From assembly GCF_963853765.1 (NCBI RefSeq), contig NC_088855.1, forward strand, positions 47,864,001 through 47,928,000: 64,000 nucleotides of DNA, written 5' to 3'. The notes beneath the pieces were generated by a model. It had not been told where the DNA came from, ran no database searches, and saw nothing but the letters and a program-made list of their open reading frames with translations. The first letter of the stretch is position 1; the number at the start of each line of letters is the position of its first letter. Below are positions 4,870 through 56,058 of the stretch, piece after piece. Position numbers and translations under genes: made by a program. This DNA comes from Magallana gigas (lineage: Eukaryota).

Positions 4870-13530
<8,661 letters not shown>

Positions 13531-14249: not shown

Positions 14250-14425
14250 ATGTGCAGATCTAGAGGGGGTGGGGAAGGGTCCGGAAAGGTTTCCTTAAAT
14301 AATTAAAATATTTTTAATTAACATAGTAAATTTACATAGTAAGATTACCGCATATATGCCTCGGACCGCCTTTTTGAAAATTTAGATATCCCTGGGAACA
14401 CCACCCCTCCCCAATGGATCCGCAA
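14250..14425. mobile_element. Short MITE-like repeat
   Basis: Starts tgtgcagatctagagggggtgggg and ends ccctccccaatggatccgca, giving imperfect inverted ends. Confidence 0.35.
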
Positions 14426-14559
14426 AATCTTGTGGCGACAACATCTCTTTTATTTTAGATCAAGACATGGAATACTCACTACTAGTAGTTAGTATTTATA
14501 GTCTTATTTCACTTTAAATGTCCGTTCTACAAATTTGAATGCCTTTCAACCCATCGACC

Positions 14560-16200
14560 CCCTCGAATTCACACCATTAGTGGTGCTGGCGGATGGGGGT
14601 GTTTTGGTTATGAATGAGACGTAAGCTATATAAAAGAAGAACCATAACATGTGGGAGTTATAGCTTGTAATTATTTGCATTGAAATTCTTTAACTTTTTT
14701 TCCAGGATAATATTTATCATAATTTAATATACATTGGGTTGTTCCGTATTTAAAAAAAAATAAAGATAGGCATAACAGGTATTTTCTCTGACTAGCAGCA
14801 GGGTTGGTTTGATTCTACTTTTGTATTTTAAAAGATGACAGATTTAGCTTAATTATCAAATGAATGACAGGCTTTGATAAAAATAATGTTTCCCTCTCAA
14901 TATTTTTGATGCCTTTTGGACATTACCTTGTATTCTTATATCAAATTATAAATTGTCCAATGCAGAAAAAGAAAGGAACTCGAGGTCACAATAGATTGAT
15001 TATGACAGAAAGAATGACAAATATGAAATAGAAAATATGCAAACTTAACGACGTCAAAAACTCGTTCTCACTCCATTATGATGAGACAAGGAGATAAAAC
15101 GGTCTAAAACACCATATAAACAGAGTAAATGTAGAATCGACTTTTTACAGCCTGTGTATGAACCATTATTGACATGTTTGAGTGTAATGGGTAAGATACT
15201 TGTTTGTCTTACAATAAAAGTGAAAACTTACCTAAAAACGGAAGGACGAGCTATGAACATAACTATCTTAGTCGACTACTGACTAGAGACGTGCTATGAC
15301 GTAATGTGACAATGCGTCAATTTGGTCTACTTGTACATACCTACTGATTTCAGGAAACATCAGCTACATGTATCTACAAACAAAACGAATTGTATGTAAT
15401 CTGGTCAGTAAAAACGCGTTTTTACACTTTTCTTATGGTTTGCAGTTTGTTTTCAGTCCTAGGTTTGGTTTTTGCGTTATAAACTTTAATACTGATACAT
15501 TTTATGCATGCAATACCTTGATAAGATAAAACAAAACCCAAAACAATTCTACCGTTTTAAATAAAAAAAAAAGTAATACATTAAAAATAAGCAACTATTT
15601 TCAATTCGCAATATAACACTTTTAAAAAATGATACTATACTAGATACAAGTATGTTTGTATAGTTTGTATAACTCACCCTTTGGATTCAGTAAAAAGCCC
15701 ACCGAAACCGATTGGATAGACTCTGAATGAACGTTTTGTACATTCTGGTCTGACTGAGTTTATTCTTTTCTTTTTGCTCGAAAAGCAGTTGTATCTCTTT
15801 CTCTTCTCTTATATTTTATGACAGCATATTGATTCATTTAAAGTTTGTGTTATCAAAAAATAAAGGGTTATACGCACGTCCGCCTCTTATTTTTTAAAGA
15901 AGAATGGAGAAAAAGGAATGGTCTCTCAAAAATCAAAAGCAATTGTTTTTTAAACACCCTTAAGCTTGCATTAAAGATTGTATGAAATATAAAAAAGGTA
16001 AATAAAATCAATTTTAGCAAAATCTTTTTTAATATTTGGTGATTTCGTCTCAAAAGTGTCGTTCTGCTTTAAATACATATAATGAATGCTAATTATGTAC
16101 AGAATACAATATGAAATAACCAAAAACATTATATTTACATATATAAACTTTAAATTAGGATCAACAAGCCAAGCTTACATGTTAGAAAACCATCGCAAGT
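14560..16200 (-). pseudogene. Internally deleted relic of a PAN-domain gene paralog
   Basis: 14560-15440 aligns by eye with 18110-18980, and 15650-16200 with 21660-22180. The signal-peptide exon copy (15743-15678, donor gtgagt) has ATG changed to ACG and a 1-nt deletion. No PAN exons remain between the two blocks. Confidence 0.6.
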
Positions 16201-16340
16201 TTTTTTCATAGCGCATGCGTAAACAGCCGATAGCAGAATGCGTAACGTCGATGTTGTAATGAGGTGATAGTGAACTAAAGAAACTAAATATTGAATAAAA
16301 GAACACTTGTCAAGACGATGAAGCATGTTTAGGTTAATAA

Positions 16341-17091
16341 TTTTTATTATAATCCCCGCAAACAAAGTTTGGGGGGGGGGGGGTATATAGGAATCACTTT
16401 GTCCGTCCGTCTGTCTGTGCAATCGTGTCCGGTCCATATCTTTCTTATGGAGAAACATTGGAAGTTCTTACTTCACACAATGATTGCTTATGACATAAGG
16501 AAGTGTCATGACCTTGACCCAAGGTCATTCGGGCAAGGTCAAGGTCACTGGCAGAAAAAATACAAAAATCGTGTCCGGTCCATATCTTTCTTATAAAGAA
16601 TTATTTGAAGTTCTAACTTCACACAAAGATTGCTTATGACCTAAGGGTGTGTCATGATCTTGACCCAAGGTCATTCAGGCAAGGTCAAGGTCACTGGTAG
16701 AAAAAATACAAAATTCGTGTCCGGTCCATATCTTTGTTATGGAGAAACATTGGAAGTTCTTAATTCACACAAAGATTGCTTATGACCGAAGTGTGTGTCA
16801 TGACCTTGATCCAAAGTCATTTGGGCAAGGTCAAGGTCGTTGGGAAAAAATAATGCAAAATTCGTGTCCGGTCCATATCTTTCTTATGGAGAAGCATTGA
16901 ATGTTCTTACTTCACACAAATATAGCTTATGACCAACAGTTTTAAAAAAAATAGAGCAGTTGTTATTTATAGAAAAATGGACGGTGAAATTGATTCATCC
17001 AATATTTTCTATAATTGGAAAAATACACGCATTATGATTTTTATCTTAGCGGGGGGTATCAATTGTGAGCTTGCTCACAGTACCTCTAGTT
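16341..17091 (+). mobile_element. Non-autonomous Helentron (HINE) carrying a ~146-bp tandem array (~3.5 copies)
   Basis: 5' T-run plus ccccgc, then a GTCC/GTCT microsatellite. The unit cgtgtccggtccatatctttc recurs at 16424, 16570, 16716 and 16863. The 3' end has gcgggg, hairpin tgtgagc-tt-gctcaca and terminal ctagtt. Confidence 0.75.
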
Positions 17092-17480
17092 TTGCATTGG
17101 TCCTTTTAGTCCACATTACGACAAAAAAGCATGCGCAAAGACATAGTTCGAAATCCCCGCACATTTGCCGTTTTGCACAAACAACAGTAGAAGATGGTGT
17201 TATTCTGTAGGATTGAACTTAAATTAAACTCTGTTTAGAATACTACCTGTACGTTGTAATCGCGGCATATTGGTTCGCTTTGTTCTATTTTGGTAAAAAG
17301 CAACTCTATGGTTGTAACAAAATTGTTGATTTTAGTTCTGTTATTAAAAAAGGTGCATTTTAAATTTTTCAAAACAAAACCTTTAAAATTCTAATTATTG
17401 AATTGTTCCGGAATTTTTTTCTAATAAAAAAGGTTCTGTCGCCGGGAAAGACTCAATCTTACACCGACAACGCTTCCCTA

Positions 17481-18015
17481 TCTATACTACTATATTAAAA
17501 TACTAGTAATAGACTCGAATTTTTGGGCTTTAATACCGAGAAATCGGAAGAGTACTGTCTTTTGTTTTATATATATTTTAATATCATTGGTATTTGGAGA
17601 TTACCAATTAGTTTTTATTTTTTCTCAATCAGGCTACGCTAATCAATAATCAACAAAATACCTGTAAAAAATCCGAAAATCGTCTTAATGTTTTGGATTT
17701 TACAATCTTGCGCATGCGCATTACATTCACACGTCATCACGGGATGCTCTTTAGTTTAATATGTTTTCACAATATCACATTTGCATGGATAAACTAAAAT
17801 CCATAATACAAATTCGTGAAAATTTTCATTACAAATTTGCTATATATTCTGTTTATGAAAGAAAATACGGGAGATTACTCTAACTCAGTGCGTTTAATAT
17901 GAAAAATTCCGAGAGTTCTGAATGTCAACATGGTGTGCAAATTTGATGTATCTATTTCGTAAATCCCCGACATAATATGCAATGTCAACCCGTGCACGCA
18001 CGGGTCAAAGTCTAG
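17481..18015 (+). mobile_element. Non-autonomous Helitron
   Basis: A|TCtatactactatattaaaa ... hairpin acccgtgc-ac-gcacgggt ... tCTAG|T. This gives a 5' TC, a 3' CTAG with subterminal hairpin, and insertion between A and T. Confidence 0.75.
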
Positions 18016-19101
18016 TTATTTTAAATAAAGTATTCAAGATGTGGAATATGCATAATTAGTGTATTTAGATTTTAATTTCACTTTTGAAAGGCCGTTTTAT
18101 CTTGATTTTTGTCCATCCACTTCCCCCATTCTGACTCTTCAGTGGTGCTGGTAGGTGCGGCGTAAACTGTATAAAAGAAGAAACATACTACATTGTATGT
18201 GGGAGTCGTAGCTTGAAATCACTTTCATTATTTGTTAAATTTCTTTAATATTCTTCTTTAAAAAATTGTTTTATTTTTCTCCTTAAAAAATAGAAGATAT
18301 ACGTAATAGGGAAAATTTGACTTGAAGCAGGTTGATTTGGTTACTCCTATTGCACATTAAAGATGACGGATTTTCCTTTATCATTAAAACGACGATATGC
18401 TTTGATATAAATATGTTTCCCCCAGGATATGTTGAAACCCGTTGGGCATATCTTTGTATTCTCAAATCAGATAATGAATTGTCCAATGAAGAACTTGTGA
18501 GATGAAATTAACTGAGACAGCAATAGGTTTATTGTGACAGAAAGAAGGACAACTATGAAACAGATAATATGCAAACTTTACCTCATATGTCAAGATATCG
18601 TTCAAAATTCATTCTGATGAGACAATGAAATAAAACGGTCTAAAACACCATATAAACAGAGAAGATGTCGAATCAACCTTCTACATTCTGTGTGTGTATT
18701 AACCATTATATTTGAAAGTAAACAATGCTTCAGTTTCCGAAATTGGTGGGAGACTTATTTGTTCTGCACTTGTCTTAAACAAGAAGGACGAGCTATGAAC
18801 ATAACCATCTTACTCAACTTCTGACTAGAAACGTTCTATGACGTAATGTGATCACGTTTCAATGCGATGTACTTGTACATACCGACTGATTTCAGTATAT
18901 ATCAGCTATCTAGCAGCACACCCGATCTTTATGAGATCTGGTCAGAGCACTTTTGCACTGTTCCTATGCTTTTCAGCAAAATGAAATAAGATAATGGTCT
19001 TTGGAATGTTGGTTGTAATCTGGTCTTGATATACAAAGACTACAGACGCGACAAAGACGAGATTGACAAATCGAGAACTTTTTTGAAACTGATTTACATA
19101 A

Positions 19102-19278
19102 AGGAATAGAGGCCGGCCAAAGGAGACTTGGCGAAGAACTGCCCTGAAAGACCTTGAAAGCAGAGGCCTGACCATTGAGACAGCACCTGGAGTAGCTGCA
19201 GACCGAGCCAGGTGGAAATCCCTTGTAGATGCCTCAAGCACCTGACGGCGCAGAGAGGATTGAACATGAACATGAACA
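19102..19278 (+). mobile_element. 5'-truncated RTE-like LINE (ORF2 C-terminus and tail)
   Basis: Translates RNRGRPKETWRRTALKDLESRGLTIETAPGVAADRARWKSLVDASST*, matching the GRPKxTW...DRxxW C-terminus of RTE-clade ORF2. It ends in a (TGAACA)3 tail. Confidence 0.75.
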
Positions 19279-19295
19279 CTTGACATGAAGCTTAC

Positions 19296-21752
19296 ACCAT
19301 GATAGACGATGCCGATCTTAGCTACATATATATTATTTGACCCATGACGTTTTACATTGATTGAAAAAGGTACTAATTTCTAAGTTCGCATGGTGTATAT
19401 ACATCGAAATAAAACTCACAGTTGCTTCGATAATACTGTGAACCATCGTCTTCACGAAACGATTCAATTGTGCTGGAGATTTCAGAATAACCCTACAATA
19501 TATTCATTACATTTATGTTAACATAATATGAGAGAGAGAGAGAGAGAGTGAGAGAGTAAGAGTAATACCTGACAGTTTCCCGAGATCCAGTTATATGTAA
19601 ACGACAGACAGGAGAAGGCTGTACACTCTTTAGCACACTCTCCAAGATCAGCCAGTCTTTCGTCAAACAAAACGTCGTCAGTGCCGTTATTTGTTATCAC
19701 GGAAAGTCCTACGTATTCAGGGGATGACGAGAAATGCAACATTGAGTATTCAGTTATACTTTATACTTGTGATCTACCCGAAAATGGCCTTCAGTATTAA
19801 TACTACGCCATTGATTGAGGTCAGGAAACGAAGGTAGCCATATATTTGGTTGAAATATCAAGGCATAAATATTTTTAACCATAAAAAATGAATACCCTTT
19901 CCTTGAGATTTTTAAAAGTTTACTTCATTGATAAAAGTAAATCATTAATTGTCAGACTCATGATAAATGACTGCCGTAGGTTGTTGATACTTAAACAATA
20001 AATAAAGGAAAAGCAAGAGTGAAAGGAATCTTAATTGACATTATTTTTCTAATTATACAGACAGTAAATTATACATAATTGTCAAAAGTATTTCTCGAGA
20101 TACTGTTCATTTATTCATTCTTTATTTCTTAAAAGAGGCATGGTCACAATTTTGGTCAAGAATTATTTTTCCGAATTTAATGTTACAAGCGAGTTACAGA
20201 GCTCACATTTCTTTACTGTGTAAACAATGCTTTTGTTTACATTTTGAATGTGGAAGTGAAAAGTCCAATTTTAGACCTTAAATGTTTATTTATGTTCAAG
20301 ATAATAAGAAGATAGACAAATCAGCTTGAAAAAGATTTTTTACTGGTATATTGAACCTAGGGCACGAGCCTTGTTACATAACAAAAAATTGTGAGCTCTG
20401 TATCTTGCATATAAATTAATGACTGACTCTCAAATTTCATTCATTAGAAATTTATAACTAATGCATTGTAAATGATAAAAACAGAAAAATAGAATTTGAC
20501 CAAAATCGTGACCATGCCGTTTTAAGCTTTGCGGCTCATCAGATTATACAAATTAAACATAGTTAAGTACAAGTGAGTGTTTTACAGGAGACCATAGTAC
20601 ATACATAAATATGAAAAATGACATTAGTAAAGAGAAAAAGAATCAAAGGAAGCTCATTTTTGATGAGAACTTATAAATCAATGGTACGTATATAAATCAA
20701 AGCTTTTTCGACAGAGGATGCTTTTATCATCATTTTAAAAAAAAATTCATCAAATTTTATTATTAATTGTATTAATTAAAGGCCCTTTGATATAAAATCC
20801 TTATGTTAACAATACATTTGAGTCTGTAAAAGACGAATTATAAGCATGATTTTCTTACAAAACATAAACAAAAAAAAATATAATTCTTTAAAACCAAGAG
20901 AATTTACATTAATACTTTCAAATATTTAAGTATGGATTTTTGAAATTCAATGTGAATTCAATTTTGGCAAATGAGAAGAGAAATATTATTTAGAAACATA
21001 TTACTTTAATGTTTATTCTATTGAAAGTTAAAATCAGATTAATTTGATTTTTTTTACAGCTTATCACAAAATCGGCATACCGCAAACACTCGATTTTAAC
21101 AATAATGATGAGAAAATATGCAAAAATTTGGCATAAAATTCCTAGATTAAAATTGTTGGTAATTCATTTCGTTTTATGGTAAGAAATAATCATGTTCAAG
21201 TATAAACCATCTCCAATAGTCATGCTAATGGTTTTCCAACCAAAATATATCTGAAAACCTAAGAATTTACCTGGGTGTTTATAAAAAGAGAAGAAACAAT
21301 ATAGGAAAGAATGTTTGTCTGTAAGTGAAATTGAAAAAAAACCTGAAATTGCTTACTTGTGTCATATAAGCAGCTAATTTAATTCTTAAATAAAAAGGGG
21401 CGTGCGATGTTTACTACATCTCTTTATAATGTTGTTCTATCGCAAACTAAATAACAAAAGTACAGAAAAGTAGATCGTGTTTGATATCTAATTTAAATTA
21501 GATAAAAAAATATTTCAAAATATTAGAATAAAGATAAAACAATACATTTGAGAATATGTACTTACTTTGTTTAAACAAGAATTTAAGACTATTTCAACGA
21601 ATTGGAAAGGAAATTTTTAAAAAGATTCTGCTATTCTTAAATCATAATTTTACAAATCTCAGTGAAACCTGTTTATATAGTTTGTATAGCTCACCAGTCG
21701 GATCAAGTAAGATCCCCAACAAAACCAACATGAATGGACTATGGAGGAACAT
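19296..21752 (-). CDS. Secreted PAN/apple-domain protein, paralog 3 (possibly defective; 3' end unresolved)
   Basis: Signal exon 21752-21695 (MFLHSPFMLVLLGILLDPT, phase-1 donor gtgagc). PAN exon ~19758-19569 (GECAKECTAFSCLSFTYNWISGNCQ, donor gtatta). Second exon 19492-19420 (GYSEISSTIESFREDDGSQYYRSN). Candidate next exon 19321-19296. The only open AG before the PAN exon is phase 2. Confidence 0.6.
20129..20525. mobile_element. TTAA-flanked MITE, family C copy 1 (reversed, internally deleted)
   Basis: ttaa-aagaggcatggtcacaattttggtca ... tgaccaaaatcgtgaccatgccgtt-ttaa. The interior matches 43069-43556 and 51042-51517. Confidence 0.75.
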
Positions 21753-23763
21753 TTTGTACACCGTAGTCAACCTGTAGTTTATCCTTTTCTTTGCTCGAAA
21801 GGCAGTTGTATCTCTTTATTTATATGACAGCATAGTGATTCATCAAAAGTTTAAGTATTGAAAAAATAAAGGGTTACGCAAGCCTGCCTCTTAGTTTTAA
21901 AGAAGAATAGACAAGAAAGAGTGGCCGTACTGTGATCAAATGTATTTGCTCATTAAACACCCTAGCTTAAATGTTCGTGCAAAGATGGTCGATTACATAT
22001 TATGAAACAATAATAGGGTTAAAATCCATTTTAACTAAAGCTACTTTTATATTTGATGATTAAGTTCAGAAGCATCGTTTTGACTTAAATACATTTGATG
22101 AATGCTAATCATGCACAGAATAAAAATAAAATCACCCAAACCTTATACGTTCATAAGCCCAAACTTGCTTGTTAGAAAACTTGGGGTTTCAGAAAATATG
22201 AGAGAAAACAATAAGTATGAGGATACAGGAAATCATCAAATTCTCCATCTTATTATCAACTTTCTTAAATTTGAGTAGTGTATGGGAGATTTCAATTAAC
22301 TGTATATTACTGAATATTCATAATTATTATCCTTGCAAAGTTGAGGAACTTATGGTATTTTATTCACAGACAGATGACATTTCCATGAGCATAATGGTAT
22401 TTCATTCAAATTGATTGACGTATAAAACATATTTTAAAAAAAACCAGTTGGTTTTGTAGTCGTTCTTTTGATTGTTTTTTACTATAAAAAGCTTAATAGC
22501 AGATTATTGATTTTAGATATTAAAAAAACTTGATATTTGAAAATTGTGGAATCAATAAATCCATGATTTAGTTGATCAAGTTCAAATACTTATATAAATG
22601 TAAAGAAAATATATAGTAAACATGATCGAGAACTTCAAGAATAATAATTAGTCTCAATATAGAATTAGAGGTACAGACAAAATCAATTTTACAATAAACA
22701 AAAATCAATTTTACAGGTACCAACCCACCTGACAATTTTCACAGAGAATAAATGTACACAATCATTATGTACAACCATCTTTCAATCTAACAGCATATAT
22801 AGATTATCAATAAATACGTACATACATTCACTATCAAAGATTTTATTTATAGACAATACGAAAAAATATAATAAAGTCATGTCATGTAAATAAATAAATA
22901 TATTAAAACTATATTCTTTACGGAGTGAATGTGATTTACTTAGAAAAGAGTAAAGCAGTACAATAAAAAAGATTTCAATAACTATTATATACAACACTTA
23001 AAGTGGCAATTTTATAATTTGAGAAGTACAATTCGGATTCTAATTATCACATGAATTTCAATTCACATAAATATAAATGTTACGTAAATTTCACGTTAAT
23101 TCAGAAGGATTACATGCGTACAAGTCTGTTATTTATTATATCTTTTAAAAATATAGTTTTGAACCTTTGTTGAATGGACCGAATAAATGTGCCCCTTTTT
23201 ATATTGATCAAGTTTAGACAAAATGGTTCTTAAAAAAAAAAAAGATTCAATGTCGTGCTATTATGATCTATAAAAAAATCAGTTCTTTTACATAGAGTAT
23301 ATACATGTAATTAATATAAACTTAGATTTAATCATAATGTGCAAATGTAAGGTTAGCCATTATGCGTACTATAACTGCCAGTATTGTTGATTATGCTACG
23401 TAGAAAATCATGCATTTTAAAAATCTATTGGTTGTTCTCTACATGTAATTTGTTTCTCAAAATAATCATCTAATTGGTATATATTTTATAAACATTGATT
23501 ATGGTAAACAATTTTCGTATTGTGGCAATTAATAGTATATGAATCAAGGAGTGTATCGATGTGAAAAAGAATAATTATAGCCGAAATATCATATTTTTAA
23601 AAATTAAAGTATTTTTTCACCATCTATTGAATTTTATCCAGGTGCTGTTCAGAGTTCCTAGTAAAATTTTCCGTTTACGTATTTATTTCTAATCAGAATT
23701 AAATGAACAATCCTGTAAAAATGAGACGCTTGCAAGTTTTTCACCATTGCTGCAAAGAAGTGG

Positions 23764-25771
23764 TTAACGATCTTTCAATCTTTTCGATCTCTTTGTGGTA
23801 GCGGGTGTAGCTAAAAGTGAAGAAAAAAAGAAGAAATTATTATTTTAAAAATATGAAAAAAAAATGAAATGGTCTTTTGCCTGCAAATTTAATAAAAGTA
23901 TTTTGATCGTAATATTTCAGCATTCGATTTTATGTGCCTTGGATATGGAAAGTGTTATAAAGTAAACGTAGGTACCTTGGACTACATTTTATTACGAGAA
24001 GAAAATACGACTACAATCTCTTCACAAAAATAGGAACGGTTATACCTTTCTGTACATCGGTTAATTCAACGTCCCCAAAAAACGGAGAGTTAACTCAATA
24101 AATTCAACACAGTGTGACACAACTTTTAATAGGTTGTGAGGTAAAGGTGAGGTATTTTTCCCTTTTTGATGCCGAATATAAGTATAATATCCGTAATTTA
24201 TTGATTGTGCGCATTAAGAACGACAAAATTTCAATAAATGAACATTATAGATAACACTCTGAATAAATATATATTTCTCCCTTAACCTTTTTAGCAAGAC
24301 TCATTGCATAAACAATGGTCAGGTTATGGTTACCATGTTAAATCAACAACCGTTAAAATCGTTCTCCGCACAAAAATGTAGTTCCAATTTGAAAGAAAAC
24401 GTAGAATGTGCATTATGCCATTTGGTCATTTTGAGTTTACATCTGCTATATTTAAACATTACACATTCTTCTCTTCCGACGTATTCTTAATACTTCGAGA
24501 GTGCCGCTATGTAAAGTTGCTGAGCGGAAAAGGTTGTTAACAATTGTAGCCAATCCAATAAATTGTTGCGGGAGTTGTTTTAGAAGCGTTACTTTACAAA
24601 AGCTAAGCTTAGCTGACCCTCGCACGATTTTTTAAATTTACGATTAAATTAAATTAAATTCATTATAGTGTCTCAATGTGACTATCCAGTTTGTAATAAT
24701 GCCAGTCTATATCATGAATACGTTTTCAATACATATCAAATGAGCACGGATATTTTTGCTTTATGTTCTTTGATTTATGATATTGATAATGACGATTACG
24801 GTAATATTAAATGAGTGAAAGAGCTTCTGTTAAGAGTTGTTTAAGAGAATGATTAAGTTATACTGTGTGCAGTTTGTAATGAGAGAGAATTATTAAAATA
24901 GAGTACATGTCAAGTGTTAGTTTATGGCCTTTGTTTCAATGACGTTCATACATGTATCTCCCCACCCGCCGTCAAACATACAAAACTCTCACAATTTTTT
25001 GAGATTGTTATAATTGTTGTGATCAAAACTCCGCAGCCTAATAAATCGTCACCATATGCCCAAGTAAAGCTTAGATAAATGGAAGAGAGAATTTAAATCT
25101 ATTGGGTCATATTTGGAGTAAATGCTCAAAGTATTATAGAACACCATTTTAAGTAAAATAAAAAAAATAATGAAATTAATAATCAAAGGTGATATGTCAC
25201 TAGTATTTAACCCCGCAGTTTAATTCTGAACTTTGTAGCATTCTCCCTCTCTCTCGTATCACTGAAATTACATCTTATCAAAAAGACCATCAATTAATTT
25301 TCTAAGAATATCAATAGAATATCACTAATTTAAACTGAGGTCTATAATTTGAATATAGTTTATATTAAATTTCAGATTTCCTTGACTCCGCCTTATCTAG
25401 TTTCGTGGTTGTGTAAAAAAAACTTACTAGTCACGGGCGGGCGAGGTTTATAAAAATACTGAGCTCCAATAACGTCCTCCAGATTAGGGTCATGTTTATC
25501 CAATATTAAAATGTGTCCCTAAAGAATACAAAATATAAATATTGTTATACAACTGTTAACACTTTGCTTTATTCATAATTAAATTATTTATCATACTAAC
25601 CAATAATTTTTCAATTGTAGTTTGGGCAATAATCTCCTTTTATTTACATTTTCAAAAATAGTTACAGGCTATTTATATACATTTTTTTTTTCAAATAAAA
25701 GATTTGGAAAGCCTACACATTCCAGTACATGTACATATATATTCATTAAAAAAAATTATATAAATACATGT

Positions 25772-25861
<90 letters not shown>

Positions 25862-26415
25862 ACACAGAAGTTTATCGAGCCCATTCCAAAATATTTCAGA
25901 AGAAAATAAATGTATTATTATCATGACGACAAACTTTTATTTAGAATTGTTATTGCAGATGTACCTACCGTGCACTGATTTAGGTCCAGATTAATCGTAA
26001 AGGATAAACAGTCGGGCTCTAGATGACACAGTTTCGCACACTCTCCCACATTTTCTGCATATTTTGGAGCAACCCAGGTGTTCAGCGATGACTCTGTAAC
26101 CCCGCGGCCTACCAGATCTTCAGAGGATTCGAACACGTCTCTAGCAAAAACTACTCACCCAACGAATGGTGAAATTAATACAATGTTTATTTATTTATGA
26201 TATTGCATTTAAAACGATATATTTAAGACTTAATCTGCTGAATTTCGGGGTTTATTTTGTGGCTTTTTGTTTTGTTTTTGTTATTTTGGGTATTTTAATA
26301 AAAAAAATACCAATGATGAAGAAATGCTCAAAAGGGAATAGGAATACTTTTAACTTGAATTACCATTGGCGTACAAGATAAAAAAGGAGAAAGAAATCCT
26401 AATCCAGAGATTCAT
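23764..26415 (-). CDS. Secreted PAN/apple-domain protein, paralog 2 (~123 aa)
   Basis: Exons 26415-26364 (MNLWIRISFSFFILYAN), 26150-25969 (VFARDVFESS...GECAKLCHLEPDCLSFTINLDLNQCT), 25518-25428 (GHILILDKHDPNLEDVIGAQYFYKPRPPVT) and 23810-23764 (TTPATTKRSKRLKDR*). Phases 1/0/1 match paralog 1, and the total of 372 nt is in frame. The last exon is the least certain. Confidence 0.75.
25786..25857. repeat. (CT)n microsatellite in a PAN paralog 2 intron
   Basis: Perfect CT run. Confidence 0.95.
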
Positions 26416-26738
26416 TGTAACTCCCATGAACACTGAGAATCTTATGACTCAATTCAAAGGCCTATCGTTCTTTTGCACTTATTATTTTAGTTTCCGTTTA
26501 CACATGCGTACATAGAGATATTAACAATTTATAGTTGCACATAACTTATGTCAAAGAATTGTTTGCTTATATCGATGCATTATTTAAAACTGTTTACAAG
26601 ATTTACAAATAAAAGTAATTATTGCATAGATTTTCCTTGTCTCGGAAATTGATTATCCTTTATCAAACAAACCTTTTATTATTCCTTTTAATTAATTTTT
26701 TTTTCTTCAAACACCAAGTGGGATTGGGATGATGTATC

Positions 26739-26741
<3 letters not shown>

Positions 26742-26797
<56 letters not shown>
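26742..26797. repeat. (GA)n microsatellite
   Basis: Perfect GA run. Confidence 0.95.
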
Positions 26798-26802
<5 letters not shown>

Positions 26803-27457
26803 CAATAAAATTAATATATTTATTCGAGTTAATTTGACGCTACCTTTAATGTTATTGGCGATAATTAAGACATTTTTCATGTTGTTGTTTTGATGTCAAA
26901 TAAAGTATTTTTCCTTATTAATATATCAAATAAATCCATTCACAAGGTATCAAACCCTTTATTCATACTGCTATATTTATTTTTGTGATAATTATTTGTG
27001 TTAATTATGATGTTATCAAAATCCGTTTAAAGATCAGTATTACTGCTAGCATATCAATATAACTCCTAAATATCCTAAGCAATCAAATGCTGAAACAACT
27101 GTTTTTCAAGTCTCTTTATTCTAAAATACCTCTATTGTCTTGTTTATCTTCAAAATACACTTCTGATGAAGCAATATGCCATTTCAAAGTATTTGCTATT
27201 CTTTTAATCCCTCTTATTGATAGTAATAATGTACATAGTGATATACAAGTAAATAACAATAAGTTAAATACCTTGAATAACGAGAAAGCGTTTTGCTTGG
27301 TGATTTATTCATTATAATGTTTTGACACACTCTCTTATAAACAAAAGCTGAGACAGGTAATTCAAATATATCATTATATGTTTGCTTCAAAATAGGATTA
27401 TTTAATTCATCATGGAGTGACCTGTCCGCCACTAGTGGTAGTGGTTTCTTGGGTGAC

Positions 27458-28754
27458 CTATCCGCCACCGGTGGTAGTGGTTTCCAGGGTAACCTGGCCG
27501 CCAACAGTGGTAGTAGTGGTTTCTTGGGTGACCTGTCCGCCACCAATGGTAGAAGTGGTTTCCTGAGTAACTTGTTCGCCGCCACGAGCCTCTTTTTGAG
27601 GACCCCCTCCTTTCTTTGTCGTTGTGGTGGATGGTATGGGTGTTGTTGGCGGTGTTGGACTGTACGCTGAATGACACGATTGTAATCAATAATCATATGT
27701 TTGATAAAAATGATTGCTTACGGGTCAAAGTGACTTGTATATAATAAAAATGTTAATTGAACTTCTTTTGACTTAAACCTACTTATGCTGTAGTAATACT
27801 GTGATCCTAAATCTTCGTTGAAAGATCCTGTTTGACGGTCGAAAATCTCAGGATGGCCCTGCATATAAACCAAAAGACATCATCGTTAACCAACATTAAT
27901 TCAAAGTTTAAAGTTTTACCATGAATAATTTTTATTGTGATTTGTACGAATAATTCGTCTCATTTTCTGTTAGCAGTCTAAATTCAGTTTATACTTGTAT
28001 GACGTTAGTTATTTAGTTATTTCTATAGTAACGCATTATTAATTCATAGGGAAACTGTAGTAAAACTTTGGTAATGAGTAGAGGATAAGAGAGACGATCA
28101 ATAGATACCCGGCAATTCCTGGTTATCCAGTTGTAAGTGAATGACAAACAGTCTTTGTTCAGTTTACACGTTTTGGCACACATTCCCATGTCATCAGCGG
28201 TGACCACAGACCACAGGTCATTTTTACGGACAGACAAACCGTGAAAGTCAAGAGAGGACTCGTAAACATCCCAGCAGTCAACTGCAATTGTGAACATAGA
28301 TCAAGTGTGAAACCACTCAACAACACAAATGATTTCAACATAACTGTTTTGCTGCTATTTTGTAGAGTAAAATCAATTTGATGAGATGGATAAAATGCAA
28401 TTAATCTTTGGTAAAGAATTATGTTAAAACATGATATATTTTAATGTATTATACTCAGAATTGATATTATAATTCAAACATATTTCTCTTTTATAAGCAA
28501 AATCTAAGTATATGCTCAATAACTAAAATATGCAACATTGATTGAATCCTTCCAAGGTCTTTAACCTAGCCATTTTGACTGCTTGCACTTTTAACATAGG
28601 TATATATAAATTGACATCTATTTGTAAAAGAAAATCAAAATTTAAACATACAATGCAAAACTGTGCTAAAACGTTTTTTATGCTTACCAGACGGATTGCA
28701 TAAAATCAACAGAAAAAAGCCCAGATAAGTGGACATGTGCAGCATCTTCTTCAT
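27458..28754 (-). CDS. Secreted PAN/apple-domain protein with Thr-rich mucin-like tail, paralog 1 (174 aa)
   Basis: Exons 28754-28688 (MKKMLHMSTYLGFFLLILCNPS, donor gtaagc), 28281-28109 (VDCWDVYESS...MCAKTCKLNKDCLSFTYNWITRNCR), 27858-27783 (GHPEIFDRQTGSFNEDLGSQYYYSI) and 27666-27458 (TYSPTPPTTPIPSTTTTKK...GGQVTQETTT repeats, ending TAG). Phases match and the total is 525 nt. Confidence 0.82.
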
Positions 28755-29559
28755 GGCACAAGACTGAAAAATCGACTCTACTTTCGATACATGCTAGTTA
28801 AACAAACATATTTTAGAAATCATTAAGTTAATACACTTACAGCTACCATATTGATTTAAAATAAAAGCATCATCATACATACAACAATAACTTGTATCAA
28901 TGCCGACAGAATCCAAGTGTTTAAAATTCAATAGCTTTGACTATGCCTTGGTTCGACAAATACTTTTATCTTCGGCTGATGTATGTTTTAATCGATGTAC
29001 ACATAGTTTTTTTTTATGGTAAACTATTTTGTTTAGAATCACAATCATCAGATTGGCGTACATTTAATATGGTTTAGTTCCTTAAAATACTCCATTTTGT
29101 TCATGTTTCTTTTATTCGCCATTCCGAATTGTTAACAGTACTGTTTGGCTAATTTCATGTCATTTTTAGTTGTTGTTAATATCTTTTGATACCTTTTTTT
29201 AAAACAACATCGATATCTTTTAGAATTAAATACAAATACCTTCCTTCTGCATTTCTTAATAACATTATGAGTGGATATATTGATCTGTGTGTATTTTTAA
29301 CAATTATGCCTTTTGGCAATCTTGGGTTTTTTTCGTAACGAATAATACTTGATAATTCACTGCACAGATGCTTGTGAAATTGCAGCTAGTTTGATTGTCA
29401 CATTTATGTTGCGTCGTAATTTTTATTATCAGATAATACTTTGTCGTATGTATGCCAATATTTCGTAATGTGATACTTCTTTCAATATATGCTAATATAT
29501 TATTGCAGGATGACATTTCGCCATTTTATACTAAAAATTTAATATTTTATTTCCTTATG

Positions 29560-38613: not shown

Positions 38614-40728
38614 TCATTTACGCATGAATAATACCAGTCTCTTCCAAAATAATTTGTTCCCGTTAGCATTTGTAGTCCATTCGACACTTTCAGCTTCTTT
38701 TAACAATGTTTTAAGAGCTATTGTGAAATGTTTGGAATCTATATCATTCAAAAGAATGAGAAGAATGTTGTCTTTATTTCCATCGGCTAATTGGTGGTTT
38801 GCTATTATAGTTTCAAATTGACACCACTGATCTTCCATGAAATTATTCGAAAGAACTAAAATAAGCTTACGACTAGATTCTATGTTGTCAAAAATATTAT
38901 CCACATGAGAACCTATCGGTAGAAAGTTTCTTTCGTGAAGACACAACTTGTAGTTTTCTTTTTTCTCCAAAATGTCGACGAGCTCTGACATTATCCACTT
39001 CCGGTCATGCGTATTATATGCAACAAAACCATCATATTCTTTAGTACCTCTGTCCACAAGTCTCTGATATCCCCTTCGTCTTCCATGGGTACAGTTATGT
39101 ATATAATATAATATGTCCCATCGGAATTTTCTAATAAGTACGAAAATAAACAAGAAAACAAACACAAATGACCCAATCGTCGCGCCTATAACAATAGTAC
39201 GATTCAACACATGACATTTCATTTCTAGGGAATGCAAATTATCTCCAATAAATCTACTTTTCCATTCTTTTGGTGAATCGCATTGGTTATCTTTGTACTT
39301 TTGAACGTGTTTTCTATTTCTTTTTGACCACTTAATGAACCATTCAAGGTCGCAATCGCAGGCAAAAGGGTTAAACGAGACGTCTATGGAAAGATTTGGG
39401 TTATTCCAGATTTCATCTGTAAATGATTCCTCTCGCAAAGAGGTGAGTTGATTTTTACGAAGAATTATTTCACTGATGACTGAATTGTTTTCAAACAAAT
39501 CCTGATGAATATGACGTATAAAATTTCCATTTAAATTCAGAGACTTGAGATGGGGAAGATGCGAAATAAAAGGAGCAAAGTTTAAGGAACAATGCCGTAA
39601 CATAAGTTCTCGAAGATCTTGCAGAGGTAGTAACATTCTATAAAAATCCTCCTTGTCAAAATTTGAAAAGTCAAAATTCGACATATCTAATGTTCGAAGA
39701 TTTGGACAATTTTTGAAAATAGTTTCATATCGCAGCAATTCTTTTGTAACTCGTTTTGGACTGCCAAAGAACAATGCAGTGAGAGACATTGACCGAAAAG
39801 CCTCCTCTTCAATCAACAGATCGTAAGTTAACATATTTTCTAATCGTAATTTCTCCAGACTTCTTATTGTTGAAAAAGCATTACTTTTAATGATACTGAT
39901 GGCATTGAAAGATAAATTTAGATATTTTAACTCTGGTAAACAATGACCTTGGCGATAGAATTCAAGCGAGTCTGAAATGTGATTTATTGCTAGCCACATT
40001 TTCTTTAGTCTTGGAACTAACGATTTGTTTTTTGCATCACACATATTTGGAATGCCGGAAAGTTCGTTTAACGTTAGGTTCAAACGGGAGATGTTGTGAA
40101 GTCCCTCCATATTCATTGCAAGTATCTTGTTATTACTTAAATCTAAAGTACGTAAATTGTTGAGATTCTGGAAAGAGAATCCACTAACATTGACCAAGTT
40201 CCAGTTTTGGAGTTGGAGAGAATTGAGAGAACTGTTTCTTTCTAAACTCTCGAACGCATTTACAGGAAGTGTAGACGGTGCTTGTTTGACGTCCGATATG
40301 TTTAGGGCTTCTATACATGAGCTGTTCAACTTCTCTAAAACCAGACGAGTATTTTTGTAAGAAATGTTATTTTTAGAGAGATCAAGCTGTCTGATATTTT
40401 GGACAGAAAGGAAAGCCTCAGGTGATATATATTTCACTTGGCATCTGCTAAGACTTAACCTCTCTATTTTCAGTGACTCGATGGGTTTTAAAAAGGCTGT
40501 CCTGATATTCATAAAAGTGTTTCCCGACAGGATTAAATTTGTAGTTGTTATTGGAAGCTGATTTTCGAGACGATGCAAAGACTCCAAGTTCCTGTCAGAA
40601 CAGTCGGTAGTTGTATTTGTGCACAAACAAGGTGTATTGGGACAAAGGTTGACTGAGGAACATTTGGTGTGGAAAACGACGACAATCACTGCTAGTATCC
40701 ATGACGCATTTGCATTATTTAAAGCCAT
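38614..40728 (-). CDS. Toll-like receptor, paralog A (704 aa), single-cysteine-cluster architecture
   Basis: Signal peptide, LRRNT (CPNTPCLC), LRRs, LRRCT (NPFACDCDLEWF...C...C), TM helix and TIR (YDGFVAYN; LCLHERNF; LFW). The true ATG is at 40728, 3 nt after the tttcag acceptor; the ORF-track extension to 40791 is intronic. Confidence 0.95.
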   Translation of the reverse strand: MALNNANASWILAVIVVVFHTKCSSVNLCPNTPCLCTNTTTDCSDRNLESLHRLENQLPITTTNLILSGNTFMNIRTAFLKPIESLKIERLSLSRCQVKYISPEAFLSVQNIRQLDLSKNNISYKNTRLVLEKLNSSCIEALNISDVKQAPSTLPVNAFESLERNSSLNSLQLQNWNLVNVSGFSFQNLNNLRTLDLSNNKILAMNMEGLHNISRLNLTLNELSGIPNMCDAKNKSLVPRLKKMWLAINHISDSLEFYRQGHCLPELKYLNLSFNAISIIKSNAFSTIRSLEKLRLENMLTYDLLIEEEAFRSMSLTALFFGSPKRVTKELLRYETIFKNCPNLRTLDMSNFDFSNFDKEDFYRMLLPLQDLRELMLRHCSLNFAPFISHLPHLKSLNLNGNFIRHIHQDLFENNSVISEIILRKNQLTSLREESFTDEIWNNPNLSIDVSFNPFACDCDLEWFIKWSKRNRKHVQKYKDNQCDSPKEWKSRFIGDNLHSLEMKCHVLNRTIVIGATIGSFVFVFLFIFVLIRKFRWDILYYIHNCTHGRRRGYQRLVDRGTKEYDGFVAYNTHDRKWIMSELVDILEKKENYKLCLHERNFLPIGSHVDNIFDNIESSRKLILVLSNNFMEDQWCQFETIIANHQLADGNKDNILLILLNDIDSKHFTIALKTLLKEAESVEWTTNANGNKLFWKRLVLFMRK

Positions 40729-41390
40729 AACCTGAAAGAGGATGTAAATTTCTCTAAAATAATTTTGTATAAGAAATACAATCTTAGTCAAACGTACTAG
40801 AAACTTGATTTTGGTTACTTATCAACTAAAAGCACAATGGAAAATAGTACATGACAGAAACGTGTATTTTCGAAGGAATTGTAAAAGTAATGAAATTTTC
40901 TAGAACAAAAATCAATAACTTTGTACTTATTGTTGTAGAAGTCCTCTTTTGAATGTTATTATTGTAATCTCCAATAAAAGCTGACACACTATAAATGTTT
41001 TACACGTATTAGAACATGGACCCTAATCGAGTTTATACCATCATTTCCGCCTATTCATTCGAGTAAAGCGACAAAACAATCCGATCATATTCTTTTCGTG
41101 ACTTCCATGAGGTTGGTCACACCAAGATCCTTCCTAACCTCACATTGCCTTGTTTGCTTCACCTAGCGAATGAATGATTTTGTGTCCTCCTTACATCTAC
41201 TTGTTCATGTTGCAACATAAAAGGAAGGAAGAAACTAATTAAAATATTTACCAGCTCTTCGAAAGCCAGTCAATGAGTCAATATATTTCCCATGTTGCTA
41301 GGAAAAAATAAAATTTATCATGATTCTAAAGGCTGATTAGACATATCATATCTACAAGATTGAATCCAGCCGTGGCAAAATGTGCGGTTT
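40729..41390 (-). repeat. Duplicated upstream/intron block shared by TLR A and TLR B
   Basis: Aligns by eye with 46334-47030 (e.g. acttgattttggttactt; aaggaattgtaaaagtaatgaaat; gaaagccagtcaatgagtcaa; tctacaagattgaatc). Not seen upstream of TLR C. Confidence 0.8.
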
Positions 41391-44215: not shown

Positions 44216-46333
44216 TTAATATTTCTGCATAAAAGAATTTATTTTTTTCCAAAATAATTTGATCCCATTATCGTTTGTTGTCCATTCGACACTTTTAGCT
44301 TCTTTTAATAACGTTTTCAAAGCGATGGTGAAATGTTCGGAATCTATATCATTCAAAAGAATAAGTAAAATTTTGTCTTTATTTCCGTCGGCTAATTGGT
44401 GGTTTGCAATTACAGTTTCAAACTGACACCACTGATCTTCCATGAAATTATTCGAAAGAACTAATATAAACTTACGACTAGATTCTATGTTGTCAAAAAT
44501 ATTATCCACATGAGAACCTATCGGTAAAAAGTTTCTTTCGTGAAGACACAACTTGTAGTTTTCTTTTTTCTCCAAAATGTCGACAAGTTCCGACATAATC
44601 CATTTTCGGTCATGCGTATTATATGCAACAAAACCGTCATATTCTTTAGTATTTGTGTCCAAAAGTCTCTGATATCCCCTTCGTCTTCCATGAGTAAAGT
44701 TATGTAAATAATATAATATATCCCATCGGAATTTTCTGATAAGTACAAAAGCAAATAAGAAAATAAACACAAATGACCCCGTCATCAAGCCTATTACAAT
44801 GGCACGATTCAAAACATGGCACGTCATTTTAAGAGAATTCAGATGACCCCCTATGTGGCTAGTTTTCCATTCCTTTGGTGAATCACACTGGTTTTCTTCG
44901 TATTTATTCACGTGATTGATATTTTTGCTTGACCACTGAATGAACCATTCGAGATCACAGTCGCATGCAAATGGATTATATGAAACATCTATGGATAGAT
45001 TTGGGTTGTTCCAGATGGTCTCTGTAAACGAGTCCTGTTTAATAGTTGTGAGATGGTTTTTTCGAAGAATTATTTCACCAAGTTCAGAATTGTTTTGAAA
45101 CAAATCCCGGTCGATGTAACGTATGAAATTTCCTTTTAAATTAATAGACTTCAGATTGGAAAGGTGCGAAGTGGGAGGAACAAAATTCAAAGAACAGTGA
45201 CGCAACATAAGATTTTCCAGATTCTTCAATGGTAGTAACATGTTATAAAAATCATCCCTGTCAAAACTTAAGAAATCAAAATGCGATACATCTAAAGTTT
45301 TGAGCTTTGGGCAATTGTTGAAAATGGTCTTATGTTTCAGCAACTGCTTTGTATCTCTTTTGGGCATGCTTATAAAAAGTTCAATCAAAGATATCGACCG
45401 AAAAGCATCTTCCTCAATCAACAAATCGTAAGTTAACATATTTTCCAGTCCTAATTTCTCCAGTTTTGATATGGTAGAAAAAGCGTTATTTTTTATAATA
45501 CTTATTGCATTAAAGGATAGATTAAGATATCTTAATTCTGGTAAACAATGGCCTTGGCGACAGAATTCTGACGAGTCCGATATATGATTAATTGCGAGCC
45601 ACAAATACATCAGTTTCGGAACCAACGATTCATTGTTTGCATTACACATTTTTGGTAGCCAGGGTAGTTCGTTTAAAGTTAGATTAAGATGAGTAACTTT
45701 ATCAAGTCCGTTCATGTTTAAGGCAAGTATCTTGTTATTACTCAGATCCAACGTATTTAAGTTGGTCAGATTTTGAAATGCCGCTCCATCAACTTGCACC
45801 AAATTCCAGTTTTGGAGTTGAAGAGATTTGAGAGAACTGTTCCCTTCAAAACTCTCGAACGCATTTACAGGAAGTGTAGACGGTGCGTGTTTGACGTCCG
45901 ATATGTTTAAGGCTTGTATACATGAACTATTCAACATCTCCAAAACCAAAAATATGTTACTGTAATTCAGATTATTTCTTGAGAGGTCCAACTGTTTTAT
46001 ATGTGGGAAGAAACGAAATGCTTTAGGTGATATATATTTCACTTGACATCTACAGAGACTTATCTTCTCTATTTTCAATGACTCAATGGGTTTGAAAAAG
46101 AATTGACTGACATTCATAAAAACGTTTCCTGACAGGATTATATTTGTAGTTGTTTTCGGAAGTTGATTTTCGAGAAGTTGCAACGACTCCAAGTTCCTGT
46201 CAGAACAGTCGGTAGTTGTATTTGTGCACAAACATGGTGTGTTGGGACAAAAGTTGATTGAAGAGCATTTGGTATTGAAAACGACGGCGGTCAGCGCTAT
46301 TATCCATGACACATTTGCGTTATTTAAAGCCAT
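44216..46333 (-). CDS. Toll-like receptor, paralog B (705 aa)
   Basis: Same signal-LRRNT-LRR-LRRCT-TM-TIR architecture, with an intact ORF. The ccttag acceptor lies 3 nt before the ATG. Confidence 0.95.
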   Translation of the reverse strand: MALNNANVSWIIALTAVVFNTKCSSINFCPNTPCLCTNTTTDCSDRNLESLQLLENQLPKTTTNIILSGNVFMNVSQFFFKPIESLKIEKISLCRCQVKYISPKAFRFFPHIKQLDLSRNNLNYSNIFLVLEMLNSSCIQALNISDVKHAPSTLPVNAFESFEGNSSLKSLQLQNWNLVQVDGAAFQNLTNLNTLDLSNNKILALNMNGLDKVTHLNLTLNELPWLPKMCNANNESLVPKLMYLWLAINHISDSSEFCRQGHCLPELRYLNLSFNAISIIKNNAFSTISKLEKLGLENMLTYDLLIEEDAFRSISLIELFISMPKRDTKQLLKHKTIFNNCPKLKTLDVSHFDFLSFDRDDFYNMLLPLKNLENLMLRHCSLNFVPPTSHLSNLKSINLKGNFIRYIDRDLFQNNSELGEIILRKNHLTTIKQDSFTETIWNNPNLSIDVSYNPFACDCDLEWFIQWSSKNINHVNKYEENQCDSPKEWKTSHIGGHLNSLKMTCHVLNRAIVIGLMTGSFVFIFLFAFVLIRKFRWDILYYLHNFTHGRRRGYQRLLDTNTKEYDGFVAYNTHDRKWIMSELVDILEKKENYKLCLHERNFLPIGSHVDNIFDNIESSRKFILVLSNNFMEDQWCQFETVIANHQLADGNKDKILLILLNDIDSEHFTIALKTLLKEAKSVEWTTNDNGIKLFWKKINSFMQKY

Positions 46334-53946: not shown

Positions 53947-56058
53947 CTATTTCCGCATAAATGAGATTATTTTCTTCCGGAATAATTTGATTCCGTTAGC
54001 ATTTGTTGTCCATTCGACACTTTCGGCCTCTTTTAACAATGTTTTCAATGCTATAGTGAAATGTTTGGAATCTACGTCATTCAAAATAATGAGTAAAATT
54101 TTGTCTTTATTACCGTCGGCTAATTGGTGGTTTGCTATTACAGTTTCAAACTGACACCACTGATCTTTCATGAAATTGTTCGAAAGAACTAAAATAAGCT
54201 TACGACTAGATTCTATGTTGTCAAAAATATTATCCACATGAGAACCTATTGGTAGAAAGTTTCTTTCGTGAAGACACAACTTGTAGTTTTCTTTTTTCTC
54301 CAAAATGTCGACGAGCTCTGACATAATCCACTTCCGGTCATGCGTATCATAAGCAACAAAACCATCGTATTCTGTAGCTCTGTCTACAAGTCTCTGGTAT
54401 CCCTTTTGTCTTCCATGAGTACAGTTATGTAAATAATACAATATGTCCCATCGGAATTTTCTGATAAGTACAAAAGCAAATAAGAAAATGAACACAAATG
54501 ATCCTGTTATCAAGCCTATAACAATACCACGATTCAAAACATGGCATGTCATTTTAAGAGAATTCAGATGACCTCCTATGTGGCTAGTTTTCCATTCCTT
54601 TGGTGAATCACACTGGTTTTCTTCGTATTTGTTCACGTGTTTGATATTTTTGTTTGACCACTGAATGAACCATTCAAGATCACAGTCGCATGCAAATGGA
54701 TTATATGAAACATCTATGGATAGATTTGGGTTGTTCCAGATGGTCTCTGTAAACGAGTCCTGTTTAATAGTTGTGAGATGGTTTTTCCGAAGAATTATTT
54801 CACCGAGTACAGAATTGTTTTGAAACAAATCCCCGTGAATGTGACGTATGAAATTTCCTTGCAGATTGATTGACTTGAGATTGGAAAGGTGCGAAGTGGG
54901 AGGAACAAAATTCAAGGAACAGTGACGCAACATTAGAATTTCCAAATTCTTCAATGGTAGTAACATGTTATAAAAATCATCCCTGTCAAAACTTAAAAAA
55001 TCAAAATGCGACACATCTAAAGTTTTGAGCTTTGGACAATTGTTGAAAATAGTTTTATGTTTCAGCAACTGCTTTGTATCTCTTTTAGGCATGCTTATAA
55101 AAAGTTCAATCAAAAGTTTCGATCGAAAAGCATCTTCCTCAATCAACAAATCGTAAGTTAACATATTTTCCAGTCCTAATTTCTCCAGTTTTGATATGGT
55201 AGAAAAAGCGTTATTTTTTAGGATACTTATTGCATTAAAGGATAGATTAAGATATCTTAATTGTGGTAAATAATGGCCTTGGCGATAAAATTCTGACGAG
55301 TCCGATATATGATTAATTGCGAGCCACAAATACATCAGTTTCGGAACCAACGATTCATTGTTTGCATTACACATTTTTGGAAGCCCGGGAAGTTCGTTTA
55401 AAGTTAGATTAAGATGAGTAACTTTATCAAGTCCCGTCATGTTTAAGGCAAGTATCTTGTTATTACTCAGATCCAACGTATTTAAGTTGGTCAGATTTTG
55501 AAATGCTGCTCCATTAACCTGCACCAAATTCCAGTTTTGGAGTTGAAGAGAATTGAGAGAACTGTTTCCTTCAAAACTCTCGAACGCATCTTCAGGAAGT
55601 GTAGACGGTGCCTGTTTGACATCGGATATTTTAAGGGTTTCTATACGTGAACTGTTCAAATTCTCCAAAACCAAAAGTATGTTTCTGTAAGTGAGATTAT
55701 TTCTGGAGAGGTCCAACTGTTTTATATATGGGAGGGAAACAAATGCTTCTGCTGAAATATTTTTAACTTGACAATTTCTCAGACTTAGGTTCTCTATTTT
55801 CAATGACTTAATTGGATCAAAGAAGAGAGTACCAATGTACCCGAAGTTGTTTCCAAACAAATTAAGATTTATTATTGTCTCTGGAAGTTGATTTGCAAGA
55901 ATTTGCAGGGACTCCAGAGTCCTATTGGAACAATCAGCTGTTATATTTGTGCACAAGCAAGGTGTATAAGGACAAAAGTTCAAGGATGACTTTTTCTTTT
56001 CGAAAATTGCTATGGTCAGCGCTAACATCCGTATCACAAGAATTTGTTTTAAAACCAT
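53947..56058 (-). CDS. Toll-like receptor, paralog C (703 aa)
   Basis: Same architecture, with an intact ORF. The tttcag acceptor lies 3 nt before the ATG. TIR box 3 reads LFRKK rather than LFWK. Confidence 0.93.
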   Translation of the reverse strand: MVLKQILVIRMLALTIAIFEKKKSSLNFCPYTPCLCTNITADCSNRTLESLQILANQLPETIINLNLFGNNFGYIGTLFFDPIKSLKIENLSLRNCQVKNISAEAFVSLPYIKQLDLSRNNLTYRNILLVLENLNSSRIETLKISDVKQAPSTLPEDAFESFEGNSSLNSLQLQNWNLVQVNGAAFQNLTNLNTLDLSNNKILALNMTGLDKVTHLNLTLNELPGLPKMCNANNESLVPKLMYLWLAINHISDSSEFYRQGHYLPQLRYLNLSFNAISILKNNAFSTISKLEKLGLENMLTYDLLIEEDAFRSKLLIELFISMPKRDTKQLLKHKTIFNNCPKLKTLDVSHFDFLSFDRDDFYNMLLPLKNLEILMLRHCSLNFVPPTSHLSNLKSINLQGNFIRHIHGDLFQNNSVLGEIILRKNHLTTIKQDSFTETIWNNPNLSIDVSYNPFACDCDLEWFIQWSNKNIKHVNKYEENQCDSPKEWKTSHIGGHLNSLKMTCHVLNRGIVIGLITGSFVFIFLFAFVLIRKFRWDILYYLHNCTHGRQKGYQRLVDRATEYDGFVAYDTHDRKWIMSELVDILEKKENYKLCLHERNFLPIGSHVDNIFDNIESSRKLILVLSNNFMKDQWCQFETVIANHQLADGNKDKILLIILNDVDSKHFTIALKTLLKEAESVEWTTNANGIKLFRKKIISFMRK

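Follow-up and report, generated by a model that had tools for sequence, protein, structure and literature searches.

A tandem family of small, predicted secreted single-PAN-domain proteins near Toll-like receptor genes in the oyster Magallana gigas

We describe three small genes, here called C, B and A, and one gene relic that lie in tandem on the minus strand of a 64,000-nucleotide stretch of the genome of the oyster Magallana gigas (NCBI RefSeq assembly GCF_963853765.1, contig NC_088855.1, positions 47,864,001 to 47,928,000 of the forward strand). The whole stretch is called the window, and all positions are given in its own numbering. The window is AT-rich eukaryotic DNA, and the first sign of the genes was three short minus-strand open reading frames (ORFs) with a PAN-like cysteine pattern between 18 and 29 kb. 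An original prediction, made from the sequence before any database search, had proposed three minus-strand genes and a relic that share one exon plan with phases 1, 0 and 1, and the gene models assembled here bear this out (Table 1).

Sequence reading and scripted exon assembly gave all three genes the same four exons: a short signal-peptide exon ending in phase 1, a PAN exon ending in phase 0, an exon with the motif G(H/Y)...G(S/A)QY(Y/F) ending in phase 1, and a tail exon that opens with a Thr/Pro run and holds the stop codon. Gene C encodes a product of 174 amino acids (aa) with a signal peptide, a PAN domain and a Thr-rich repeat tail, identical to XP_011432919.1 (P0058). Gene B encodes a 127-aa product with a signal peptide, a PAN domain and a short Thr-then-basic tail. 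The tails had been described beforehand as Thr-rich in C and short and basic in B, which is correct (C carries a repeat, and the B tail is encoded by exon 23810-23764), and the tail of gene A, which the prediction had left unplaced, is encoded by 18166-18078. No further PAN exons were found in the whole window by tblastn with the three products. The family had also been called hidden, which is true of a prokaryote-style ORF track and no more: genes C and A have RefSeq/UniProt entries, and in M. angulata each of the three is a called gene.

Table 1. Features of the PAN gene family and of the neighbouring Toll-like receptor genes in the window (CDS, coding sequence; UTR, untranslated region; TRF, Tandem Repeats Finder).
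Feature	Position	Strand	Details
Gene C (LOC105332160)	27092..28754	-	CDS 28754-28688, 28281-28109, 27858-27783, 27666-27458; 3' UTR to ~27092; RNA contigs
Tandem repeat, gene C tail exon	27417..27580	-	36-39-nt unit, ~4 copies; TRF
Gene B	22933..26427	-	CDS 26427-26364, 26150-25969, 25518-25428, 23810-23764; long 3' UTR to ~22933; RNA contigs
Gene A (LOC105332148)	18078..21752	-	exon 1 21752-21695, PAN exon to 19569, exon 3 19492-19420, exon 4 18166-18078; tblastn of public models
Relic, decayed partial duplicate of gene A	14383..16141	-	blastn against gene A, 70-72% identity
Toll-like receptor 1 of 3	38614..40791	-	single ORF; Pfam LRR_8 and TIR; 9.9 kb upstream of gene C
Toll-like receptor 2 of 3	44216..46333	-	Pfam LRR_8 and TIR
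Toll-like receptor 3 of 3	53947..56058	-	Pfam LRR_8 and TIR

RNA-derived contigs from three runs (X1-X3) of two studies were aligned to 22900-28850, the part of the window that holds genes B and C. Spliced contigs confirmed all six introns of the two genes, with GT..AG borders on the minus strand, at joints 28688/28281, 28109/27858 and 27783/27666 in gene C and 26364/26150, 25969/25518 and 25428/23810 in gene B; joint 26364/26150 is supported by one contig from one run, and the gene C joints fall exactly where the sequence-based exon model had put them. Word depth of the contigs was ~50 over gene C and 5-9 over gene B, and at the 3' side they reach ~27092 and ~22933, respectively. Two further public RNA contigs (L008 and L009) are full-length spliced gene C cDNAs. 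No joint linking gene B with gene C was found among the RNA contigs over this region. Raw polyA reads of metatranscriptomic run X21 gave no match to 22900-28850, but only ~1 in 100 reads was sampled. With a stop codon and a 3' UTR in each transcript and no joint between them, B and C are separate genes, and the proposal that they encode small stand-alone proteins, each with a signal peptide and a single PAN domain, holds at the transcript level along with its exons. Long perfect (CT)n and (AG)n microsatellites lie at 25776-25858 (gene B intron 2) and 26742-26798 (upstream of B, between C and B).

The PAN exons carry the cysteine pattern C-x3-C-x5-C-LSFT-x7-C in genes C and B and C-x3-C-x4-C-LSFT-x7-C in gene A. 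This agrees with the predicted C-x3-C-x4/5-C-LSFT core; the predicted spacing of 6 or 7 after LSFT does not, as it is 7 in all three genes. Against Pfam PF00024 PAN_1 (gathering threshold 21.4 bits), exon 2 alone scored 38.5 bits in C, 23.0 in B and 25.3 in A, so that each PAN exon is above threshold, and the full-length proteins scored 38.6 (C) and 29.5 bits (A). The full-length match covers exons 2 and 3, profile positions 6-71 of 76. Gene B's orthologue in Crassostrea virginica (P0013) scored 19.0 bits, slightly under the threshold. As anticipated, the paralogues are highly diverged, with 42-51% identity between PAN exons, and every paralogue and orthologue keeps the four core PAN cysteines (C-x3-C ... 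C ... C). The outer cysteine pair of the six-cysteine apple subtype is absent, and no member has a C-terminal cysteine. An N-terminal cysteine occurs only in the C-type proteins, where it has no partner inside the domain; it stands just after the signal peptide in the C-type proteins of every genus and gives the mature protein an odd number of cysteines.

An AlphaFold (AF2) model of the gene C protein was built from an alignment of nine family sequences. Its PAN core has a predicted local distance difference test score (pLDDT) of 60-86, and its tail is disordered. The model contains strands at 27-40, 48-50, 69-73, 78-82 and 93-106 and a helix at 54-63, that is, the single helix on an antiparallel sheet of the PAN fold. 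Foldseek against the PDB returned PAN domains throughout, with probability 1.00 and a template modelling (TM) score by target of 0.6-0.7 for small targets; the matches were the N-terminal PAN domains of plasminogen and hepatocyte growth factor (HGF), Sarcocystis SML-2, Toxoplasma MIC4, leech anti-platelet protein (LAPP) and the apple domains of factor XI. By sequence, the only related solved structures are MIC4 and SML-2 (E 1.6e-6 to 5e-4), and the best E-values to these solved galactose-binding apple domains are 1.6e-6 and 1.6e-5.

A profile of the three PAN exons was searched against 1.84 billion cluster representatives and gave 55 matches. Small single-PAN matches with an identified source came from oysters only (M. 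gigas, M. angulata, C. virginica, Saccostrea cucullata and Ostrea edulis); one more small match, an unnamed 205-aa ENA protein (P0050), is of uncertain origin. The other named matches, from annelids, sharks, octopus and protists, are multi-PAN proteins of a generic kind. Word-indexed searches with the gene C PAN exon and full protein returned self-like entries only, and the family was found by the exhaustive profile search. Public annotation lists the M. gigas genes LOC105332160 (C) and LOC105332148 (A) as uncharacterised or, in UniProt, as "Apple domain-containing protein"; orthologues are LOC128189853 and LOC128187887 (M. angulata), LOC111136108 (C. virginica) and LOC134231309 (S. cucullata), and the O. 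edulis member is annotated as mucin-2-like (XP_048749302). In M. angulata a 128-aa gene is called at the place of gene B.

In the window the TLRs (Toll-like receptor genes) are followed by C, B, A, the relic and then the carboxylesterase and otopetrin genes. M. angulata has a TLR, C and B, then an integrase-type transposon, then A and the relic; in C. virginica a C-type and a B-type gene come before the carboxylesterase and otopetrin genes, and there is no A. The order C-B-carboxylesterase-otopetrin is thus common to M. gigas and C. virginica, and since the carboxylesterase and otopetrin genes are both present, the two loci are orthologous. Gene A and the relic occur in both Magallana genomes, and neither turned up at the orthologous locus of C. 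virginica. The B/C pair is old, as C- and B-type genes occur beyond Magallana (C. virginica, Saccostrea), and A is a younger copy. A PAN-domain phylogeny groups the B types of M. gigas and C. virginica (91/99) and sets A on a long branch that leaves its origin unplaced. The gene in the M. angulata B-A gap has DUF3504 and Phage_integrase domains (Crypton- or DIRS-like) and is absent from the 1.2-kb B-A spacer of the window. S. cucullata has a B-like PAN copy 2.7 kb downstream of its C-like gene, with an in-frame stop and a frameshift in the PAN exon; it is not a called gene.

Gene A was placed by exon matches to public protein models and by its PAN_1 score. The public models (M. gigas XP_011432909 and M. 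angulata XP_052714499; P0006 and P0061 used for tblastn) match exons 1, 3 and 4 in the window, and the PAN exon from its Met on. Exon 2 of these models opens with Val-Gly-Gly, in M. angulata after an ACAG acceptor. Relative to M. angulata the window has a 7-bp gap (19742-19760) in which the canonical exon-2 acceptor and the Val-Gly-Gly codons are missing, and PAN-exon homology extends to 19742. On sequence reading, every AG upstream runs into a stop, and only the AG at 19710-19709 keeps phase 1; this cryptic acceptor starts exon 2 at 19708 and deletes ~14 residues of the first strand. The loss of the acceptor and first exon-2 codons found in M. angulata and in the RefSeq M. gigas model, and the cost of the sole in-frame replacement, raise the question of whether this haplotype carries gene A as a null allele or as one in decay. 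Its sister copy, the relic, is already dead, and no full gene A protein was found in the Logan RNA contigs. Ratios of nonsynonymous to synonymous substitution (dN/dS), calculated by the Nei-Gojobori method, point the same way: between M. gigas and M. angulata the ratio for gene A is 0.9 over the whole gene and 1.6 for the PAN part, the latter from six nonsynonymous and one synonymous change, which is too few for a test. The remaining reading frame, however, is intact. We regard a null or decaying gene A as a serious possibility that falls a little short of an even chance. A shorter microsatellite (19530-19562) stands directly after the gene A PAN exon, and a 114-aa ORF without a Pfam match lies at 18942-19286 (-) within gene A intron 3.

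The predicted relic is real and matches gene A, though it lacks the PAN exon and also exon 3. By blastn, 15653-16141 matches the gene A 5' flank and exon 1 (72% identity), and 14620-15445 matches intron 3 and exon 4 (70% identity). The exon-1 copy (15743 onward) has an in-frame stop, and the exon-4 copy lies at 14626-14549. The same relic is found downstream of gene A in M. angulata, with 92% identity. Between relic and gene A, at 16404-16934, lies a 146-bp tandem repeat of ~3.5 copies (86-91% alike), probably part of a transposon or satellite.

For genes C and B, dN/dS between M. gigas and M. angulata is 0.3-0.5. Between M. gigas and C. virginica, a comparison in which dS is near saturation, it is 0.24-0.27 for gene C and 0.19 for gene B. 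These values show that the PAN family is fast-evolving yet constrained, with purifying selection on B and C. The original prediction had called the family diversifying, a description that fails for B and C; only A has a ratio near 1, from very few changes, and this young copy looks relaxed.

The family alignment gives one order throughout, namely signal peptide, PAN domain, Thr run, basic cluster and a variable, often repetitive tail, with basic or dibasic motifs right after the Thr run (KK in C-type proteins, RRKR in the B-type protein of C. virginica and KR..KR in the gene B product of M. gigas). In gene C the repeat unit corresponds to 12-13 aa (GGGQVTQETTTT-like), and the repeat extends beyond the TAG stop at 27460-27458. 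This stop, which lies inside the tail repeat, is polymorphic with TAT (Tyr); the TAT allele adds 16 residues of Thr-rich repeat and yields a 190-aa product. Both alleles are expressed: the polymorphism shows in RNA run X1 and between the cDNA contigs L008 and L009, and M. angulata carries the long form (P0057). C-type tail repeats are longer in C. virginica and O. edulis. The Pro/Thr/Ser-rich tandem repeats that mark mucin-like proteins are present in gene C, and genes B and A show no more than a short Thr cluster. The products, at 119-190 aa, have PAN as their sole domain and contain neither the vWD and Cys-knot architecture of gel-forming mucins nor a membrane anchor.

The structure of the genes and their products is well supported, and from it we infer function. 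We think it reasonably probable that C, B and A belong to an Ostreidae-specific family of small secreted proteins, made of a signal peptide, a four-cysteine PAN domain, a Thr/Pro-rich tail and a basic cluster, with an extracellular binding role. The PAN module would bind an extracellular glycan or protein ligand, by analogy with LAPP, SML-2/MIC4 and the HGF N domain. The Thr/Pro-rich tail is probably O-glycosylated, judging from its composition, and such a mucin-like stalk could hold the molecule in an extended, hydrated state within mucus or extracellular matrix. In the C type, the conserved fifth cysteine may join two copies into a dimer through a disulfide, or may tether the protein to a different partner.

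LAPP (PDB 1i8n) comes from the saliva of a blood-feeding leech and binds collagen. Like the oyster proteins, it is small and secreted and has a single stand-alone PAN domain (TM by target 0.62), but it lacks a Thr-rich repeat tail and any detected sequence match, and is a fold-level analogue rather than a family member. MIC4 and SML-2 (PDB 4a5v, 2ll3 and 2yil) share the fold and also match in sequence over the C-x3-C...C..FTYN...C core. They show that a PAN module can act as a galactose lectin, and one of them engages TLR N-glycans (PMC6608980). Unlike the oyster proteins, they are multi-domain or dimeric parasite adhesins, and three residues that follow their last core cysteine are missing from the oyster proteins. 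The N-terminal PAN domains of plasminogen and HGF were the top Foldseek matches (4dur and 3hms) and have the four-cysteine hairpin-loop core in common with the oyster domains, but they are N-terminal modules of large kringle/protease proteins that serve heparin/receptor binding or auto-inhibition.

Several points count against a secreted binding family of this kind. The Foldseek E-values are weak (~0.01), because half of the gene C model is disordered. O-glycosylation and signal-peptide cleavage were read from composition. Lectin activity is an analogy built on overall similarity to MIC4/SML-2, lectins that are marked by conserved sugar-binding residues (e.g. MIC4 Lys469). Loose linkage to one TLR subfamily has been kept in three genera, which is compatible with a functional tie. 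In the literature searched (by identifiers, by PAN/apple with oyster, and by SRA runs), no papers on these genes or on the function of the family were found.

The tails also bear on a different role. Instead of serving in recognition, the proteins could help to build or glue a matrix such as shell, periostracum or larval cement, or they could be precursors that are cleaved at the dibasic sites behind the Thr run. Those basic or dibasic motifs are conserved across species, the tails are repetitive and of low complexity, and the mucin-2-like label of the O. edulis member fits as well. The best-conserved part of the proteins, however, is the PAN fold and not the tail, there is no match to known shell-matrix protein families, and the sole paper pairing a PAN domain with Crassostrea gigas lists PF00024 for phosphate-mineralising systems and not these genes. 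We consider a matrix or precursor function unlikely.

The family was further predicted to lie ~10 kb from three co-oriented TLRs, and it does: all three are intronless genes with LRR and TIR domains. In one protein search, TLR 1 had orthologues in Saccostrea and Ostrea (56-64% identity). The PAN gene has a TLR upstream of it, on its own strand, in M. angulata (7 kb), O. edulis (a TLR13-like gene, 59 kb) and S. cucullata (an LRR-only gene at 42 kb and a TLR at 76 kb, on the same contig). In C. virginica, however, no TLR was found within 4.3 kb upstream of the PAN pair, and no close TLR orthologue was returned by a search limited by its word index. Dynamin-like GTPase, VWA7-like and RING-finger genes lie between PAN and TLR in Ostrea and Saccostrea. 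Because the linkage is loose and unrelated genes intervene, it is best read, on gene order, as conserved linkage that fits ordinary inherited gene order.

It had been suggested that the PAN proteins are soluble TLR accessory factors, which would bind the TLR ectodomain or its N-glycans or present ligands, and would be co-regulated with the TLRs. Adjacent, co-oriented TLRs in the window and a same-strand member of the same TLR subfamily upstream in the three other species favour this. MIC4, the apple-domain lectin of Toxoplasma, binds TLR2 and TLR4 of mammals through their N-glycans (PMC6608980), so that binding of a TLR is not an absurd idea. That precedent, however, is a parasite-host interaction, the genes between PAN and TLR in Ostrea and Saccostrea are unrelated, and C. 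virginica retains C and B where the searches just described gave no neighbouring TLR. Nothing here supports a TLR-accessory role for the oyster proteins, and we consider one very improbable. A more specific version, by analogy with MIC4, would have the PAN proteins act as endogenous soluble lectins on the ectodomain N-glycans of the linked TLR subfamily, tuning mucosal TLR signalling, with the pairing keeping the genes linked throughout the oyster family; this is a long shot. The TLR idea can now be tested by binding and co-expression.

There is next to no chance that the PAN exons form one long multi-PAN gene and that the three-gene reading is an artefact: all the exons share one orientation and multi-PAN proteins are frequent among the more distant matches, but in the RNA contigs over B and C each gene has its own signal-peptide exon, stop and 3' UTR with no joint between genes, the public models are products of 174, 133 and 128 aa, and the single-gene model was rejected.

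A secreted binding family remains our preferred reading, and it does not introduce a novel type of system: PAN proteins of the stand-alone and lectin types are known, and annotation of the genes themselves already existed. What the locus offers is a transcript-checked description of oyster-restricted stand-alone PAN proteins that databases call uncharacterised, which settles the gene models and shows an old B/C pair, a recent and possibly decaying duplicate and a stop/Tyr polymorphism that alters tail length. Beyond the relic, the carboxylesterase gene at 4870-13530 (+) is multi-exon, with Pfam COesterase pieces in order and a run of N at 7677-7807 inside it, and the otopetrin gene lies at 940-2457.

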